Shown here: one piece after another, positions 6,972-30,297 of the stretch
Layout of the letters: each line of letters begins with the position of its first letter
Numbering within the stretch: the stretch's first letter is position 1
NCBI GenBank assembly: GCA_943704425.1
Contig: CALSCP010000738.1
Location: 59,972 to 123,971 of the forward strand
Length of the DNA stretch: 64,000 bases
Source of the DNA: Ministeria vibrans ATCC 50519
Taxonomy: Eukaryota; Protista; Filasterea
Reading direction: 5' to 3'
Program-made: the position numbers and the translations under genes
Notes under the pieces: model-generated
What the model saw: the letters and a program-made list of their open reading frames with translations, nothing else
Told to the model about the DNA's origin: nothing
The model's database searches: none

Positions 6972-7520
6972 ACAATCTTAGTAATCGTCACCACGCGAGA
7001 GGACCTCTGACATTTACTATGTAAATAAATAATTGTAGGCATTTATTTCACAACGTCGTAATTTTTACACAGTGGGCTTGGCTGATTGGCTCTTTTATTT
7101 TACTACCCTTGTCAAACCCCTTTAGTCTTTACATAGTAATCTGGATTCTGGATTCTGGTGCCATATCAGACAGTCTAGCGTGAGTGCCCGGAGGTAGCTC
7201 CCTCTATTATGGTCATTCATTCTGGGTATTGGATAAAACCGTACTTATTTTTGTTTTTGTCTTCTTGTACCCTCTCTCTTTCTCCAGGTACGCTCCCTTA
7301 CCTTAGTGACGTTAGTGTTTGTCGATTAAGAAGAAATGTAAAGGTGCTATGCAGCTTGATCGACGCTGATCTAGATAAGTTGTCGTTTCAGTCTTTTTAA
7401 TCCCTTTCTTTTCATTCATCATAGAGCAGAAAAAACGCTGTTGGTTTGTGTGATCAGTCCATATACTTGGTATCAGGTATACACTTTAATCTCAAGTGAA
7501 AATGCCGGTACCCACAACAT

Positions 7521-7542
7521 TATATAAAATAGCATTATATAT
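7521..7542 (+). promoter_or_regulatory. TATA-like elements upstream of the permuted tRNA gene
   Basis: TATATAAAA at 7521-7529 and TATATA at 7536-7541, 25-45 nt upstream of the predicted leader. Confidence 0.5.
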
Positions 7543-7576
7543 CACTTTTTCTTGTTTTCCGCTTTGAACGATTGTT

Positions 7577-7668
7577 ATCAATTCTCTACGGAGGCGTGAG
7601 TTCAAATCTCACTGGCGTCGCTTGTAATTCGACGCTATGGCGGAGTGGTCTAACGCGATTGACTTGAA
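7577..7668 (+). tRNA. Circularly permuted tRNA-Ser(UGA): 3' half 7577-7620, 10-nt spacer, 5' half 7631-7668
   Basis: Acceptor GACGCTA/TGGCGTC; D-arm GCG..CGC with GG; anticodon stem ATTGA/TCAAT; loop CT-TGA-A|A; variable arm CTC-TACG-GAG; T-arm GTGAG-TTCAAAT-CTCAC; discriminator G73. The halves reconstitute an 82-nt class II tRNA. Confidence 0.93.
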
Positions 7669-7674
7669 TCGTTA

Positions 7675-7684
7675 TTTTTTTTTT
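7675..7684 (+). terminator. Pol III oligo-T terminator
   Basis: T10 run six nt after A37 of the tRNA 5' half. Confidence 0.7.
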
Positions 7685-7861
7685 GATCCATCTATCTACT
7701 TGGAAAGATCCAAGGAGAGTAGGAGAGAGGAAGATTTTTTTTTTTTCGTTTCGTAAGAAAAATAATAATTAATAATATTATTTATTATAGAGAAAAGAAT
7801 CGAAATAATATTTTTTTTTCGATTTTTATTGTTCTGTACACAAACTACATTTTTTTTTGTG

Positions 7862-22564: not shown

Positions 22565-22778
22565 AATTAACGATTGTTATTAATATTACAATAAGACTTC
22601 TCTTTTTCTCCACTTCTACTCACATCGCGCATGAACGAATGTTCTACTTGTAAAAGAGATTGTCTGCTGCCAGTATCGGGCAGCCTACGACGGCCTGTCT
22701 AAAAGAGTGCCTATACAGTCAGTCTCTTTCTCTATCACTTTGTTTCTCTCTCTCTCTCTATCACTTTCTCTCTCTATC

Positions 22779-22922
<144 letters not shown>

Positions 22923-22931
22923 NNNNNNNNN
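22923..22931. other. Assembly gap hiding the 5' part of the spectrin gene
   Basis: N run between a (TC)n tract and mid-repeat spectrin coding sequence. Confidence 0.97.
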
Positions 22932-22932
22932 C

Positions 22933-25900
22933 GAGGTTGTGCAGTGGACGCAGGAGACGCAGGCGGCGTTGGATGCGGCCGAGCTGGGCGACGACCTCAT
23001 TGCCACGCAGGATCTGCGCAAGAAGCACCAGTCGGTCGAGGTGGAGATTGGCGCACAGGGCGAGGCTGTGGCGGAGCTGCGTGCGCGAGCGGACGGGTAC
23101 ATTGGCGCGGGGCACTTTGATGCGGAGGGCATTGCAGCGAAGCGCACAGAGCTGACGGACCTGTTTGACGGACTGCGCGCAGCGTCGGCGCGGCGTCGTG
23201 GCGATTTGGAGGATATGGAGAAGTTCCACCAGTTCAACCGCGAGGCGGCAGAGGTGGAGTCGTGGATCAAGGACAAGGAGGGAGTGGCGCAGGCGGAGGG
23301 CGAGGGCAAGGACATTGCGCAGATTGAGTTGCAGCGGAAGAAGTTTGAGAAGTTCCAGAACGACTTGGCGGCGAACGAAGACCGAGTGCGCGCAGTTGGG
23401 GATCTGGCACAGCAGCGTGCGGACGAGGGACATCCGCGTGCGTCGGAGATGCAGGAGCGCAACGAGGCGCTGCAGGAGAGCTGGCAGGCGCTGCACGGTC
23501 TGACGGGCGACAAGAAGGGCACGCTGGCGGACACACACGCTGTGAAGGTGTTTGAGCGTGACGCGGAGGAGACGAAGCAGCGCCTGGCGGAGAAGACTGC
23601 AGCGATGGAGGTTGACGAGTTTGGCAACGATGTGGCGAGTGTGGAAGCACTGCAGCGCAAGCACGAGGACGACGAACGCGATGTGGCGGCGATCGCCGGC
23701 AAGGTTGGCGAGCTGGCGAACACGGCATCGGAGCTGGCGTCGAGCAAGCCTGGGAGTGCTTCTGTGGTGCGCGATCACGACGAGGAGTTGCAGACGCGCT
23801 TGGCGGCGCTGCAGATGGCCACGAATGTGCGGGGTAGCAAGCTCAAGGACTCGCTTGACAAGGAGCTCTTCTTCCAGGCCCAGCGCGAGACGATGTTTTC
23901 CGTTGGTGAGATGCAGTTGCGTGCCTCTGCGAGTGAGTTGGCGGACAATCTGTCCAATGCTGACTCGCTTCTCGGTGAGCACGCAGAGTGTCGTTCGGAC
24001 CTTGATTCTCTGCTGGTCACCGTCAGCGGTGTGCGTTCCATGGGTGAAGGTTTGGTGGCGCGCAACCACTACGCGTCGGACGAGGTGCGTGAGCGTCTCG
24101 AAGAACTTGACACTGGAAAACTGAAGATGAACAAGCTGTGGGAGGCGCGACAGCATTTACTTGAGCAGTGTCGCGAGCTGCACATCTTCCATGGTCTTGT
24201 AGCGGCAGCGCGTACCTGGATGAACAATGGTACATCGTTCCTTTCGAACGGCGATGTGGGTGACTCTGTGAGTGCCGTCGATGCGTTGCGTAAGAAGCTT
24301 ACTGACTTTATGACGACGGTCCCGGTCGAGGAGAAAAACATCAAGGCGCTGGGCGAGCGCTCTATTTCGTTGCAGTCGAGCGACCATTATGCGGCGGCAG
24401 AGATTGCTGAGCGAGCTGCCGAGGTTGAGGCTGAGTGGGCGAGCTTGGGTGCACTCAGTGTCTCGCGCGAGCAGCAACTTGAGGCGTCGCGTCGACTCCA
24501 GGCTTATTTGCAGACCGTGCACGACACGGATGCGTGGATTGCGGATCGCATGGCGGTTGCATGCGAGGAGAACTATCGTGATCCGGTGGGTCTTGCTGAC
24601 AAGGTTGCCGAGCACGATGTGTTCCAGGCAGAGTGTAAGACTAACGGACCTCAGGTCGAGGCAATTGGCAGCATGTCGGAAGCGCTTGTGGCCGAGGGCA
24701 ACACACAGGGAGGCGAGGTGGAACTCCGTGGCGCGGCCACTCAGGAGGCTTATGCAGCACTGCTTGACAAGGTTGCCGAGAAAGGCACGCGTCTGAATGA
24801 GGCAATGGAAGAGCAGGAGTATTTGCGGGGTGTGGAGGACGAGCAGCTGTGGATGGGTGAGACGCAGACGCTCTTGTCAAGTGACAACGTTGGCAAAGAC
24901 GTACCCAGCGTGGAGAACCTTCGCAAGAATCAACAGTTGGTGGCGGGTGATGTGGACGCACACGAGTTCACTGTGATGGGTGCGTTGCACGACAAGGCGG
25001 CCGACATGACGGGTGCGAACCATTTTAACGGTGCGTTGATTGAGGCACGCCAGAGCGCGCTCGAGTCCGAGTACACCCGTGTGCGTGAGTTGTCTCGGAA
25101 GCGTGGTCGCGATCTCGAACAGGCGGAACAGTACTTTGTGTATGTGGCGGACACGGACGAGTTGGCAGCGTGGATGTCGGAGCGTGTGGCCGTGTTGCAC
25201 TCCAAGGAAGACCCTACAACGCTCGAGCAGCTGGCGGGCATGACTGCCAAGCATGATGAGTTTATGAAGGAAGTGAATGCAAACCGACCTCGTCTGGAAC
25301 GACTTGCGCAAGCTGTCGATGCCCTGGCGAGCGACGGGAATCCGCGAGAGATGGACGCTGTTGCACGCCAGTCAGAGCTTGCGCACGATTGGGCGCAATT
25401 GGAGACCGAGATGGAGGACGAGGCTGAGCACCTCGAGAACATGAAGGACGTGCTCACATTCTACAGCGCCGTCGACGACACCCTCAGCTGGTTGCGCGAC
25501 AAGGCACGTGCCTTGCCGGACAGCCTTGGTGCGGATCTGTCGAGTGTGCAAATGCTTCAGCGTAAGCATGAGGCGACAGAGCGTGATCTCGTGGCCATCG
25601 AGTACAAGGTTGAGGCGCTTGTCACGGACGGCACGAAGCTTGCCAAGACGTACCCGAACGAGTCTGCGGGTCTCGAGGAGCGTCGCGACCTTCTCGATTT
25701 CGAGTGGAAGGAGCTGCGCAAGAGTGCCGACACGCGTGACAAGCAGCTCGAAGAGGCATTCCATGGTCACCAGGCCTTGACGGACGCGCGCGAATTGCAG
25801 CTTGTGCTCGACGAGCTTGCGAAGCGTGTGGCCGTGAGCGAGGGTCGCGAGGGTCTCACCAGCGAGGCGGCACACGATTTGGCGACCGCTAAGATGTTTG

Positions 25901-28900
25901 TGTCGCGTCACGACGAGCTTCACGGCGATCTCGAAGTGGTCGATGTGCAACTTGAAAGTGTGGTGAGCGCCTGTCAGAAACTGGTGGACGCGGGACATCC
26001 TATGACGGAGAGTGTTTGTGAGGCGTCGCAGACGCTGTCGCGAGTGCGCCAAGAGTGTGGAGCGACGTGGACGACACGTCGTGGGCTTCTTGCTTCGTCG
26101 GTGGACGTGCACCAGTTTTACGAGGACTGTTCGGCGTTGCGTGCGCAGCTGGACTCGCAACGAACCATTGCGGAGCGCACTGACGTGGGCACGACTCTTG
26201 CCGAGGTGGAGGCGCTTCAGCAGCAGGTGACAGACTTTGTGGGTCAGTGCACGGCGACATTGGAGCGTCTTGGATTGCTCGCGGAGCGCGGTCAGTCGTT
26301 TGTGGACGCCGGTCACTACGACGCGGCACAGGTGACGGCACGCCTTGAGAAGCTGCGTCAAGTCCGGGACGCTGTCGCTATGCAGTTGGAGAAGCGTCGC
26401 GAGCTGCTTGAGAATGCTCTTCGGGTGCAGCACTTTTTGCGTGACTGTGGCGAAGAGCAAACGTGGATTGACGAGCATGTGGCGGAGGCGAACGACCAGT
26501 CGTACCGCGACGTGGGCGTTGACGCGAGCGTGCGCTGGAATAAGCACACTGCCTTTATGGAGGTGATTGAAACCGCCGCGCCACGCATGCAAGCGCTTGC
26601 CGACAAGCGTGAAGGTGTGTCCGCGCTTGCGACGGACGATCTCTCTGCCCAGGTGAGTGCGCAACACAGAGCGCTGGACGAACACTGGCAAGCGCTGCAG
26701 CAGAGCGCGGCAGCAAAGAGTGCCGGTCTGCAAGAGGCACTGGCTCGCCAGGCGTTTAACAGCGAGTGTGACAACCTTTCGCTGTGGATGGGCGAGACTG
26801 CGCTGGTGTTGCGTGCGGTTGAGACGGGCGAGAGTGTGTCGGGCGTACAAAGCCTGCTGGCCAAACACGAGTTGGTGGAGGCGGGTTTGCGTGCGCGAGG
26901 CGACGCTCTGGTGGCGCTGCGACGCACCTCGGCGGGTTTTGTCGAGTCGGGTCACTTTGATGCGAGCAAGTTGGAAGCGCGCGGCGAGCAGCTTCAGGTG
27001 GAGTACGACGGCCTGGTGGCGACGTCGGCGACACGACGGGGCGAGCTGGAGCACGCTCTCGAGGTGCAATTGTTGCTGAAGGATGCAGAGAACCAACTGA
27101 TGTGGCTGCGAGAGAAGGACGTGTTGGCTCAGTCAACGCAGTCCGGCCGTGATCTCAGTGGCACACAGGGCCTGCTGACCAAGCATGCGACTCTGACTGA
27201 GGATGTGGAACGTCGACGCGCCGCTGTGGAAGCCGTGTCGAAGCGAGCGCACGATGTGATTGCTTCCAATGTACACGAGAACGACCGTTCCCTCGTTAGC
27301 GGCAAGGTGGAGGAGTTGAAGGGTGCAGTGGTGGCCATTGGCAAGGCGCTCTCGGCACGCCAGGCGTTGCTGGAAACCTCGCTGCGCCTGTACGAGTGGC
27401 TCACTGAAGCGGACGGCGAGTTGTTTTGGGCGACCCAGGTGAGCGGTCAGCTGACGAGCGGCGATTTTGGTTCGTCCAAGACGGCGACGGTTGCGTTGCA
27501 GAAGCAACTGACGGCAACCATGACGGATGTGGAGACACACAAAAGTGCCATTGACAAGCTTCAGTGTGCGGGCGAGGCGCTTATGTCGTCCTCATCGACG
27601 AGTCTTGCCGACTCGGAACGCGAGCGAATTTGCGCGTCGCGTAACGAGCTCACGACGCTATTGACGAACCTCGAGCAGCAGCAAAAGGAGCGTGAGGCGG
27701 GTCTTGCGTCGGCACTGCTCTTCCATTCGTTTATGCGCTCGGCCGACAGTCACGCCCTGTGGTTGCAGGCGCAGTTGACCGAGGCGCGATCGGAGGAGGC
27801 GGGCAAGTCGCTTGCAGACGTGGCACGGCTGTTGCAAGATCACGAGCGATTCTCTACGGAGTGCAAGGCAGACGCCGAGAAACGTCTCGAGGCGCTTGTC
27901 GCGACCCAGTCAACGTTGGCTAAGGAGGGACACACGCAGGCGGATTCCATGGCGACCCGTCTGGAGGAGTTGGCGACGCAGTGGCGCAGTGTGCAGGAGG
28001 CGTTGCAGCGTCGCAAGGTGATGCTGATGGACAAGGACAAAGAGTTGCGGCGTCTCGACGAGTTGTGCCAGCAGTTTGCGTCGGGAGCGTCGGCATTTAA
28101 CAGCTGGCTCGAGACGGCGACCGAGGACCTCAATGAGCCGGTGCGTGTGGGCAGTGTGAAAGAAGTGGATGCGTTGCAGGCGGCGCTCTTGGCCTATCAA
28201 CAGTCGCTTGTGCAAATGAAGGGGGACTTGGACTCGCTCACGTCGGCCGACACGTCGCTGCGCCAGGCAGGTGTTGTGCGCAACCCATACACGCGATTCG
28301 ACGTGACCGCACTCATGGACAAGTGGAATACAATTCTGAAGCTGATCGAGGAGCGCATTGTGTTGCTGGACAACGAGGCGGATCGACAGGACGACAACGA
28401 CGAGCTGCGTCAGGACTTTGCAACGCACGCCAACGGATTCAACGACTGGCTGGTGAGCATGCGACAGCAGCTGGCGTCGGATGGCGGTGCAGACCTTCGC
28501 GAGCAACTGACGCAGATTCGTAAGGTGCAACAGTTGATCCAGCAGCGCAAGGGTGACGTTGCCAAGATTGAGCGACTGGGCGAGGCGATGGAGGCGGCGC
28601 TCATTTTCGACAATGAATACACGGAGCACACGCCGTCGGCACTGGCGCAGCAGTATGATCAGCTGGAGGCGATGGGAAAGCGACTCGAGGCGAATGTTGA
28701 GTTGCAGATTGCGGCGAGCGAGAGCAGCGGCGTGAGCGACCAGCAGTTGCGCGAGTACCGCGAGACATTCAATTACTTTGACAAGGATCGCAGTGGGCAT
28801 TTGCAGTACATTGAGCTCAAGGCGTGTCTGCGCTCTCTGGGCTACACCTTTCCGACGCTGCAGGAGGGCCAACAAGATCCCGAGTTTGCCAAGATTGTCG

Positions 28901-30297
28901 CGGTGGTGGACACAACAGGCAAGGGCCACGTCAGTCGCGACGAGTTTATTGCGTTTATGATTCAGCGCGAAACGGAGAACGCTGAGAATGCGGACGATGT
29001 GGTGGCGGCGTTCAAGTCGACGGCGGGCGAGCGCGAGTACGTGACCAAGGCAGAGTTGTACAAGATGCTGCCAAAGGAGCACGCGGACTTTTGCATGTCG
29101 CGCATGGACGCGTACGTTGACGAGAATGGCTTTCAAGTGCGCGGGCGCTACGACTATGCATCGTTCACCAAGGCAATGTATGGCCAGGGGCGTACGGCTG
29201 CTCTTGACGCGATCAATGCCAAGCATGCGGAGGAGGCGGCGCAAGCGGAGCGCGAGGATCACGAGGGGATTGAGCAGGAGAAGGCGCTGCTGCAACAAGA
29301 GCTTGAAGCGATGCAGGCGACCGAGTTAGCCTATCGCCAGGAGGACCTGACGGCGGCCGACCAACAGCGGGAGGAGCACGAGAAGGAGAAGGAGGCGCGC
29401 CACGAGTCGCTGCAACTCACACGTGAACAAGTGCAGAAGGAGCGGGCACAGCAAGCGGCCGAGCTGCTTGCACATCAGCAGGCGGCTCTCAAGGAGAGTG
29501 AGACTCAGCGCGAGCGTGAGCAGGAAGCGTTGAAGAAGGAAGCGACGGCTCGCGCGGCGAAGGAACGCGAGCGGATGCGTGTTGAGGCGGAAAAGCGTGA
29601 GGCGGCTCTGGCAAAGTTGCTTGAGGCGAAGCGTCGGGACGCGGAGCGAGCCCAGACGGCGGAAGTGAGCGAACGTCAGCGACGTGTGGCAGCGCAGGCG
29701 GCGGAGCGTGAGGCGCACTCAAAAGCACATGCAGAGCAAGCGGCGGCTGCCAAGAAGACGGCAGTGACACTGGAGCGAGAGCGAACCAACATAGAGGAGG
29801 CAGCGTACAAGGCTGAGGCTGAGCGCAAGCGTGCGCGCGAGGCGATGCTTGAAGAGCAGGCTGAAAAGCGGAAGGAGCGCGAGACAACTGCATTGAACGT
29901 CGAGAGGAGTTTAGCTGCGGCCCGTCAGCAGCAGCTTGCCAAGGAGTTGGAGGGACGTGCGAAGCAAGAAGAGATTGAGCGACGCGAGGCGGAGGCTCTT
30001 GCGAAGCGCACGGAAGAAAAGCGGGCGGCAGTCGAGGCGGAGCGCAAGATGCGCCTTGAGAAGCAGCTACAGGAGGCGGCGGTTAAGGCCAAGGCAGCGG
30101 CCGAGGTGAAGGCCCGCGCCGAGCAAGAGCGACTTATGACTGAGCAGCGAGCTCGCGAAGAGAAGGAAGCGCAGTTGGCGGAGCGACGGCGCAAGCTGGA
30201 GGAGGACAAGGAGGCGGCGCGAGCCAAGGCGCAGAAGGACGCAGCGCGGTTGCGTGCTGCGAACGAGGCGTCAAAGAGACACAGCAAGCGCGTTTGA
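22933..30297 (+). CDS. Alpha-spectrin-like protein (5' partial): about 18 spectrin repeats, EF-hands, charged coiled-coil tail
   Basis: ~106-aa Trp-containing repeats; alpha-type terminal repeats ASAFNSW, NPYT.F, ALIFDNEYTEH; EF-hands FDKDRSGHL..ELKACLRSLGY, YVTKAEL, YDYASFT. One uninterrupted 7.4-kb ORF. Confidence 0.95.
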   Translation, partial: EVVQWTQETQAALDAAELGDDLIATQDLRKKHQSVEVEIGAQGEAVAELRARADGYIGAGHFDAEGIAAKRTELTDLFDGLRAASARRRGDLEDMEKFHQFNREAAEVESWIKDKEGVAQAEGEGKDIAQIELQRKKFEKFQNDLAANEDRVRAVGDLAQQRADEGHPRASEMQERNEALQESWQALHGLTGDKKGTLADTHAVKVFERDAEETKQRLAEKTAAMEVDEFGNDVASVEALQRKHEDDERDVAAIAGKVGELANTASELASSKPGSASVVRDHDEELQTRLAALQMATNVRGSKLKDSLDKELFFQAQRETMFSVGEMQLRASASELADNLSNADSLLGEHAECRSDLDSLLVTVSGVRSMGEGLVARNHYASDEVRERLEELDTGKLKMNKLWEARQHLLEQCRELHIFHGLVAAARTWMNNGTSFLSNGDVGDSVSAVDALRKKLTDFMTTVPVEEKNIKALGERSISLQSSDHYAAAEIAERAAEVEAEWASLGALSVSREQQLEASRRLQAYLQTVHDTDAWIADRMAVACEENYRDPVGLADKVAEHDVFQAECKTNGPQVEAIGSMSEALVAEGNTQGGEVELRGAATQEAYAALLDKVAEKGTRLNEAMEEQEYLRGVEDEQLWMGETQTLLSSDNVGKDVPSVENLRKNQQLVAGDVDAHEFTVMGALHDKAADMTGANHFNGALIEARQSALESEYTRVRELSRKRGRDLEQAEQYFVYVADTDELAAWMSERVAVLHSKEDPTTLEQLAGMTAKHDEFMKEVNANRPRLERLAQAVDALASDGNPREMDAVARQSELAHDWAQLETEMEDEAEHLENMKDVLTFYSAVDDTLSWLRDKARALPDSLGADLSSVQMLQRKHEATERDLVAIEYKVEALVTDGTKLAKTYPNESAGLEERRDLLDFEWKELRKSADTRDKQLEEAFHGHQALTDARELQLVLDELAKRVAVSEGREGLTSEAAHDLATAKMFVSRHDELHGDLEVVDVQLESVVSACQKLVDAGHPMTESVCEASQTLSRVRQECGATWTTRRGLLASSVDVHQFYEDCSALRAQLDSQRTIAERTDVGTTLAEVEALQQQVTDFVGQCTATLERLGLLAERGQSFVDAGHYDAAQVTARLEKLRQVRDAVAMQLEKRRELLENALRVQHFLRDCGEEQTWIDEHVAEANDQSYRDVGVDASVRWNKHTAFMEVIETAAPRMQALADKREGVSALATDDLSAQVSAQHRALDEHWQALQQSAAAKSAGLQEALARQAFNSECDNLSLWMGETALVLRAVETGESVSGVQSLLAKHELVEAGLRARGDALVALRRTSAGFVESGHFDASKLEARGEQLQVEYDGLVATSATRRGELEHALEVQLLLKDAENQLMWLREKDVLAQSTQSGRDLSGTQGLLTKHATLTEDVERRRAAVEAVSKRAHDVIASNVHENDRSLVSGKVEELKGAVVAIGKALSARQALLETSLRLYEWLTEADGELFWATQVSGQLTSGDFGSSKTATVALQKQLTATMTDVETHKSAIDKLQCAGEALMSSSSTSLADSERERICASRNELTTLLTNLEQQQKEREAGLASALLFHSFMRSADSHALWLQAQLTEARSEEAGKSLADVARLLQDHERFSTECKADAEKRLEALVATQSTLAKEGHTQADSMATRLEELATQWRSVQEALQRRKVMLMDKDKELRRLDELCQQFASGASAFNSWLETATEDLNEPVRVGSVKEVDALQAALLAYQQSLVQMKGDLDSLTSADTSLRQAGVVRNPYTRFDVTALMDKWNTILKLIEERIVLLDNEADRQDDNDELRQDFATHANGFNDWLVSMRQQLASDGGADLREQLTQIRKVQQLIQQRKGDVAKIERLGEAMEAALIFDNEYTEHTPSALAQQYDQLEAMGKRLEANVELQIAASESSGVSDQQLREYRETFNYFDKDRSGHLQYIELKACLRSLGYTFPTLQEGQQDPEFAKIVAVVDTTGKGHVSRDEFIAFMIQRETENAENADDVVAAFKSTAGEREYVTKAELYKMLPKEHADFCMSRMDAYVDENGFQVRGRYDYASFTKAMYGQGRTAALDAINAKHAEEAAQAEREDHEGIEQEKALLQQELEAMQATELAYRQEDLTAADQQREEHEKEKEARHESLQLTREQVQKERAQQAAELLAHQQAALKESETQREREQEALKKEATARAAKERERMRVEAEKREAALAKLLEAKRRDAERAQTAEVSERQRRVAAQAAEREAHSKAHAEQAAAAKKTAVTLERERTNIEEAAYKAEAERKRAREAMLEEQAEKRKERETTALNVERSLAAARQQQLAKELEGRAKQEEIERREAEALAKRTEEKRAAVEAERKMRLEKQLQEAAVKAKAAAEVKARAEQERLMTEQRAREEKEAQLAERRRKLEEDKEAARAKAQKDAARLRAANEASKRHSKRV

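Follow-up and report, generated by a model that had tools for sequence, protein, structure and literature searches.

The closest described systems are the circularly permuted tRNA genes of algae and of one archaeon. A review from 2014 (PMC3978253) counts 34 such genes (Cyanidioschyzon merolae has 11, four prasinophytes together have 19, and the Bigelowiella nucleomorph, of green algal origin, and Thermofilum pendens have 2 each), with spacers of 1–74 nt, and documents for them a circular intermediate, a junction of the bulge-helix-bulge (BHB) type, a TATA-like promoter and a T-stretch. Auxenochlorella was added in 2025 as a further host, and a review from 2026 still names permuted tRNA genes from algae and archaea only. 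The lineages listed in a preliminary description of the DNA analysed here agree with the 2014 and 2026 reviews, with Auxenochlorella to be added. Its statement that no such gene had been reported from opisthokonts also stands, as none came to light in the literature: our searches found no report of a permuted tRNA gene outside algae and one archaeon, and no relevant report on permuted tRNA for holozoans, opisthokonts, Filasterea, labyrinthulomycetes, thraustochytrids or apusomonads.

The locus described here shares with the permuted genes of C. merolae (Soma et al. 2007, 2013; PMC3978253) the position of the 3' half upstream of the 5' half, the short spacer between them, the upstream TATA-like promoter and the downstream T-stretch. 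It occupies positions 7577–7668 of the window (the whole stretch of DNA that was analysed, 64 kb in length), where the preliminary description had proposed a circularly permuted tRNA-Ser(UGA) gene broken between positions 37 and 38 of the tRNA. This proposal was borne out by ARAGORN applied to the swapped halves and by a strict structural descriptor, and we regard the locus as very likely (with a probability of about 0.85) a functional, single-copy nuclear tRNA-Ser(UGA) gene of the circularly permuted type II (37/38 junction). The features of the locus are as follows.

7526–7545, + strand: putative upstream promoter element, recognised as a motif of fixed spacing common to the tRNA genes of this genome
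7567–7576, + strand: leader, paired in the minimum-free-energy fold with nt 36–37 and the trailer
7577–7620, + strand: 3' half of tRNA-Ser(UGA), 44 nt, tRNA positions 38–73
7621–7630, + strand: intervening spacer, 10 nt, with no T-run and no promoter motif inside
7631–7668, + strand: 5' half of tRNA-Ser(UGA), 38 nt, tRNA positions 1–37
7669–7674, + strand: trailer, 6 nt, of which 7669–7673 is predicted to pair with the leader
7675–7684, + strand: run of ten T residues (T10), a Pol III terminator signal read from the sequence

The 3' half carries the 3' strand of the anticodon stem, the long variable arm, the T arm, the 3' strand of the acceptor stem and G73, which is directly followed by the spacer, CCA not being encoded in the locus. 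The 5' half carries the 5' strand of the acceptor stem, the D arm, the 5' strand of the anticodon stem and the loop through A37, with the anticodon TGA at 7665–7667. When 7631–7668 is joined to 7577–7620, ARAGORN identifies a tRNA-Ser(UGA) of 82 nt, with an acceptor stem of 7 bp (one G-U), a D stem of 3 bp, an anticodon stem of 5 bp and a T stem of 5 bp; the 82-nt cloverleaf with G73, long variable arm and UGA anticodon that had been read from the letters is thus recovered with all stems intact. The swapped halves show the conserved nucleotides U8, G18G19, U33 and T54–C56. The predicted tRNA would have serine identity by its long variable arm (a variable region of 13 nt with a 3-bp stem), by G73 and by the UGA anticodon. 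Compared with the canonical tRNA-Ser(AGA) encoded in this genome, it shows ~70% identity and a variable arm that is nearly the same, and its D arm is closer to the Leu genes of the genome than to its other Ser genes. The descriptor comprised, for the 3' part, the T-loop motif, a 5-bp T stem and a 7-bp acceptor stem across a spacer of ≤80 nt and, for the 5' part, U8, a D arm with GG, a 5-bp anticodon stem formed between both ends, U33 and R37. It produced a single match in the 64-kb window, which is the Ser(UGA) locus, and none in 300 random windows of 64 kb each with first-order Markov composition, which excludes a chance origin of the permuted cloverleaf. ARAGORN, applied by brute force to every possible half length, accepted far too many candidates with the acceptor and T arms fixed, and explicit stem checks were used. 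At the DNA level, the order of the halves, the cloverleaf and the external signals that characterize a type II permuted gene are all found at 7577–7668.

The preliminary description had also expected that default scanners would miss this gene. In the native order, ARAGORN detects no tRNA in the whole 64-kb window and Rfam detects nothing at the gathering score, so that the permuted Ser(UGA) gene escapes ordinary scanners; a permissive Rfam search returned one sub-threshold tRNA match (15.4 bits), anchored on the T arm. The 131-nt locus is present in one copy in the 29.7-Mb assembly, with no second copy of either half. The order of the halves recurs in contigs from two other sequencing runs: a contig of 347 nt from a 2024 algae metagenome (X7) spans 7405–7746 with 0 substitutions and a T-run shorter by one T, and a contig of 1197 nt from a run of 2022 that bears the label of the same organism (X1) spans 7400–7752 with 0 substitutions. 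The runs that hold DNA of the window include algae, seawater and marine metagenomes.

The putative promoter element at 7526–7545 consists of an AAAATAG box, 10 nt with a TATA-like end, CAC and then a T-rich stretch, and stops 31 nt short of the first coding base (7577). The same rigidly spaced motif is found 25–44 nt upstream of canonical, intron-containing and permuted tRNA genes alike, the canonical genes that bear it including Ser-AGA, Gly-GCC, Leu-CAG and the initiator Met. Genome-wide, the motif pattern gave 78 matches vs 31 with the reversed control; downstream of most clean matches stand a tRNA-like sequence and a T-run. This two-part upstream motif looks like a gene-external Pol III promoter, as judged from its sequence and position. 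Of the 10 type II permuted genes aligned at the junction, 9 have a T-run of ≥7 that starts 2–14 nt past nt 37. As the upstream motif and T10 flank the locus and neither occurs in the spacer, the unit looks like one Pol III transcript. Three further loci, L085 (C1993:66399–66699), L087 (C2371:117282–117582) and L088 (C2497:224882–225182), exhibit the promoter motif with no tRNA-like sequence and a T-run 55–130 nt downstream of the motif; they may encode small Pol III RNAs. Among the RNA-like contigs, apparently from poly(A)-type runs, X9 covers only 7425–7538 and X15 has nothing at the locus. The X9 contig, probably from an RNA run, has its end within the promoter motif and 76 unrelated letters on its 5' side; it could belong to a spliced transcript or to a neighbouring one.

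For the native transcript, the predicted fold is a cloverleaf in which the spacer closes the acceptor stem (z = -2.4). In the predicted fold, the leader (7567–7573) forms a 7-bp helix with nt 36–37 and the trailer, which extends the anticodon stem; G7574, three bases ahead of A38 (leader -3), is able to pair with C32 (7663), and 7575–7576 together with A38 make up a 3-nt bulge containing the predicted 3' cut site. Eukaryotic splicing endonucleases use the anticodon-intron pair to fix the 3' cut, and the modelled G7574:C32 pair is its equivalent. The pair between leader -3 and nt 32 is Watson-Crick in 10 of 10 type II permuted genes, with a chance expectation of ~0.25 per gene. In the canonical register the central helix at the Ser(UGA) junction comprises one pair (G7574:C7663), not 4, and the minimum-free-energy fold puts the 5' cut site within the leader-trailer helix; across the 10 genes the central helix has 1 to 4 bp. 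The modelled Ser(UGA) junction is therefore different from a strict BHB. A covariance model of the type II permuted genes was dropped, as MAFFT misregistered the genes with 4-nt and 5-nt variable loops.

The Ser(UGA) gene resembles the ordinary tRNA genes with a 37/38 intron, represented in this genome by Arg-CCT, Leu-CAG, Ser-GCT and Ser-CGA, in the predicted cut sites, in the pair to nt 32 and in the enzymes expected to act on it. Unlike in these genes, the A and B boxes of the permuted gene stand in reverse order, and the 'intron' is split into leader and trailer, so that ligation would give a circle and not a linear tRNA. By analogy with the known permuted genes and from the conserved signals, we infer the expression of the Ser(UGA) gene, its circular intermediate and all RNA steps as follows. 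RNA polymerase III would start at the gene-external upstream promoter (7526–7545), read the leader, the 3' half, the 10-nt spacer, the 5' half and the trailer, and halt at T10. The transcript would fold as a cloverleaf, its leader-trailer extension resembling an intron-containing pre-tRNA, and a tRNA-splicing endonuclease of the Sen2/Sen34 type would cut after A37 and before A38. RtcB would then ligate position 37 to 38 to yield a circular RNA, which RNase P and tRNase Z would open at the acceptor stem with removal of the spacer, and CCA would be added after the opening of the circle. Two loci with the catalytic domain of the tRNA-splicing endonuclease (PF01974, on C1244 and C1078) and one multi-exon RtcB gene (on C2497) were identified in the genome. 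A Sen-type endonuclease and RtcB are expected in any holozoan, and their presence shows only that the parts of the pathway exist.

The preliminary description had treated the gene as a single case, which does not hold: disruption affects tRNA genes all over this genome, and the genome-wide search revealed at least 17 permuted loci, for 14 anticodons, distributed over three junction types as follows.

37/38 junction, one locus each: Ser-UGA, Arg-ACG, Cys-GCA, Gly-UCC, Thr-UGU, Gly-CCC, Ala-UGC, Thr-CGU, Arg-CCG and Lys-UUU
37/38 junction, two copies each: Val-AAC and Ile-AAU
D-loop junction: Arg-UCG, which also carries a 12-nt canonical intron
T-loop junction: Lys-CUU, two copies, one of them on contig C277 and recognised by eye

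Several of the permuted genes carry extra inserts in the T arm or T-loop. Six loci were reconstructed by eye, with the acceptor pairing or the junction pairs checked: L037 (Arg-CCG), L038 (Lys-TTT), L044 (Arg-TCG), L076 (Lys-CTT), L082 (Ala-TGC) and L083 (Thr-CGT). A search for a T-loop followed by a downstream A box gave 68 matches genome-wide, no more than the control; the acceptor complementarity of the inspected matches is bimodal, with 11 loci showing 6–7 pairs and the remainder ≤4. The search with the promoter motif contributed further permuted loci, and the four loci common to both searches lead to a rough capture-recapture estimate of ~25–30 permuted loci.

The Rfam tRNA model gave 63 matches in the whole genome (a lower bound), and the matches divide into ~27 on a mitochondrial-type contig, ~25 in odd clusters and ~25 ordinary nuclear genes, several of which contain introns. 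With only ~25 canonical nuclear tRNA genes detected, the permuted genes would be needed to fill the set. Ectopic or multiple introns occur also in genes that are not permuted (among loci L077, L080, L081, L084, L086 and L062–L064): as recognised by eye, Leu-CAA has inserts in the D-loop and the anticodon loop, Pro-AGG has a 50-nt insert in the D-loop and Ala-AGC an 8-nt insert in the D-loop. Taking together the 17 loci, the 14 anticodons, the three junction types, the ectopic and multiple introns and the putative gene-external Pol III promoter throughout, we think it probable that no eukaryote outside Cyanidioschyzon has so far shown a set of disrupted tRNA genes as large and as varied as that of this heterotrophic unicellular relative of animals.

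The odd clusters comprise 5–9 tRNA-like genes, 25–100 nt apart (L001 on C2093, L002 on C585, L003 and L005 on C2083), with near-identical backbones and different anticodons (e.g. Pro-UGG and Ala-UGC). Some of the clustered 'Leu' genes are 74 nt long and lack the long variable arm, and some T-loops are aberrant; the clustered genes are only 64–67% identical to the permuted genes of the same anticodon. At L056 (C425:28813–28986) ARAGORN identified Phe-GAA and Ile-GAU, 27 nt apart with a T-run between them; one of the two encodes CCA, and both are unlike the other nuclear tRNA genes. Contig C1523 (55,949 bp, with L035 and other loci), with 24% GC and ~27 tRNA genes, one of them with the anticodon UCA, is the probable mitochondrial genome, and the UCA anticodon suggests that UGA is read there as tryptophan.

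That the genome would use TCA codons and lack an ordinary tRNA-Ser(UGA) gene had been anticipated, and the results are in line with this expectation. No other tRNA-Ser(UGA) was found among the genome's matches to the Rfam tRNA model (a lower-bound search), and a genome-wide search with a pattern of the class-II D arm and the UGA anticodon arm yielded only the Ser(UGA) locus as tRNA-like. Five other matches to this pattern were rejected (no promoter, no T-run, no tRNA). Counted over 7 long ORFs of the window, Ser codons number 625, of which 73 are TCA. An ordinary Ser(UGA) gene heavily disrupted by introns could be present elsewhere in the genome, and a tRNA-Ser(AGA) with inosine-34 might read TCA, in which case the permuted gene need not be essential.

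The alternative that survives best, which we nevertheless consider improbable, is that the locus has lost its function: an intron-containing tRNA-Ser gene would have been duplicated in tandem, and the locus would be the decaying remnant of this duplication, with expression and processing now lost. Such a relic would agree with the lack of coverage of 7577–7668 by the RNA-like contigs, with the deviation of the junction from a strict BHB and with the capacity of the canonical tRNA-Ser(AGA) to cover TCA in part. It is at odds with the stems of the swapped tRNA, all of which are intact, with the promoter motif and T10 terminator at their usual distances, with the retained pair between leader -3 and nt 32, with the failure to find another Ser(UGA) gene and with the same architecture in sixteen sibling loci. 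A still smaller chance, hardly more than slight, is given to the reading in which each half gives its own RNA and the two RNAs are joined in trans, a scheme known from split tRNA genes in some archaea. Complementarity of the halves in the acceptor and anticodon stems is a trait shared with split tRNAs, but the halves are just 10 nt apart with no promoter motif or T-run between them, and a single promoter motif precedes the 3' half and a single T-run follows the 5' half, as in the siblings; separate loci with a promoter and terminator for each half, typical of split tRNA genes, are thus not found at 7577–7668. Finally, an error of assembly (either ordinary tandem tRNA genes collapsed into one, which the preliminary description names as a possible refutation, or a chimeric contig) may be dismissed although the assembly is in pieces (2860 contigs), since X7 from the 2024 metagenome and X1 from the 2022 run span the locus in the identical permuted order without substitution, its flanks are unique sequence with the promoter motif and the terminator signal, and the 131-nt locus is single in the genome. 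A functional permuted gene accordingly remains our preferred reading of 7577–7668.

The host had been described as apparently holozoan from the genes flanking the locus, and at the level of marker genes this assignment is upheld. The genome contains T-box genes at two loci and integrin-beta genes at three loci, and no match to PF00504 (chlorophyll a/b-binding, LHC) or PF00016 (RuBisCO large subunit) was found in it. In the window, the + strand has one open frame at 22660–30297 (2545 codons); its product, with EF-hand domains and 17 stretches that match spectrin repeats, would fit an alpha-spectrin. One protein combines EGF, TSP1 (thrombospondin) and receptor-L domains, and the taxa in a protein atlas comparison are weakly opisthokont-leaning. 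The HSP90 gene of the genome is interrupted by introns. T-box genes are known from opisthokonts only, integrin beta is not known from fungi, and long spectrins are a holozoan feature. The combination of T-box, integrin beta and spectrin with no photosynthesis genes points to a unicellular holozoan, as an indication from markers and not from phylogeny, and fits a non-photosynthetic, holozoan-like heterotroph.

The set as a whole resembles that of C. merolae also in its junctions in the D-loop, at 37/38 and in the T-loop, in its ectopic and multiple introns, sometimes within one gene, and in the too small number of tRNA genes found by standard scanners. It differs in that C. merolae is a red alga and the present host a non-photosynthetic protist with T-box, integrin-beta and spectrin genes, in the number of permuted loci (17 here, at the DNA level, vs 11) and in the upstream element, which is longer here, rigidly spaced and two-part. 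In Ostreococcus and Micromonas (Maruyama et al. 2010), type II Ser(UGA) genes are of the same isoacceptor and have the same 37/38 junction, with spacers of 12–33 nt vs 10 nt here, a likeness by description; their junction is of the relaxed kind recognised by the eukaryote-type endonuclease, which the junction predicted here may share. These green algae, unlike the present host, have 3–6 permuted genes and almost no atypical introns. In the archaeon Thermofilum pendens (Chan et al. 2011, PMC3218864), the permutation is, as here, presumably resolved by the splicing endonuclease, and a gene with a T-loop junction is found here too (Lys-CTT on C277, recognised by eye), whereas the archaeal junctions are only at 59/60, CCA is encoded and the endonuclease is heterotetrameric.

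A first scan of metagenomes for an identical Ser(UGA) gene gave no match. A relaxed scan detected one contig from another organism (L104, Ga0181554_1022264, 3.9 kb), which carries at positions 73–179 a permuted class-II gene that gives a tRNA-Leu(AAG) when its halves are swapped. The sequences of its D and T arms are the same as those of the window gene, the spacer is 25 nt long, a T11 run is present and the leader and trailer form a near-canonical bulge-helix-bulge. The coding GC of this contig is much higher than that of the window, and an ankyrin-repeat gene is present on it; its source could be a prasinophyte. The apparent permuted gene of this contig shows the permuted architecture in a second natural organism and has no bearing on the lineage of the window.

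What is new here is a whole system of permuted tRNA genes in a non-photosynthetic protist with adhesion and transcription-factor genes of the animal type. A permuted set in a protist related to animals unties such genes from the algae and brings back the question whether permuted tRNA genes were retained from an ancestor or arose more than once. The independent origin proposed in the preliminary description is one possibility, besides ancestral retention and gene transfer. If the reading is true, permuted tRNA genes and a relaxed splicing endonuclease are not an algal or archaeal peculiarity, and they would either have arisen independently among the relatives of animals or date back to early eukaryotes. 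On this reading, the splicing endonuclease of a eukaryote should tolerate cut sites at a great distance from 37/38, and Pol III should transcribe tRNA genes whatever the order of their internal A and B boxes. The finding also implies that, in relatives of animals, standard scanners can miss a large part of the tRNA genes.
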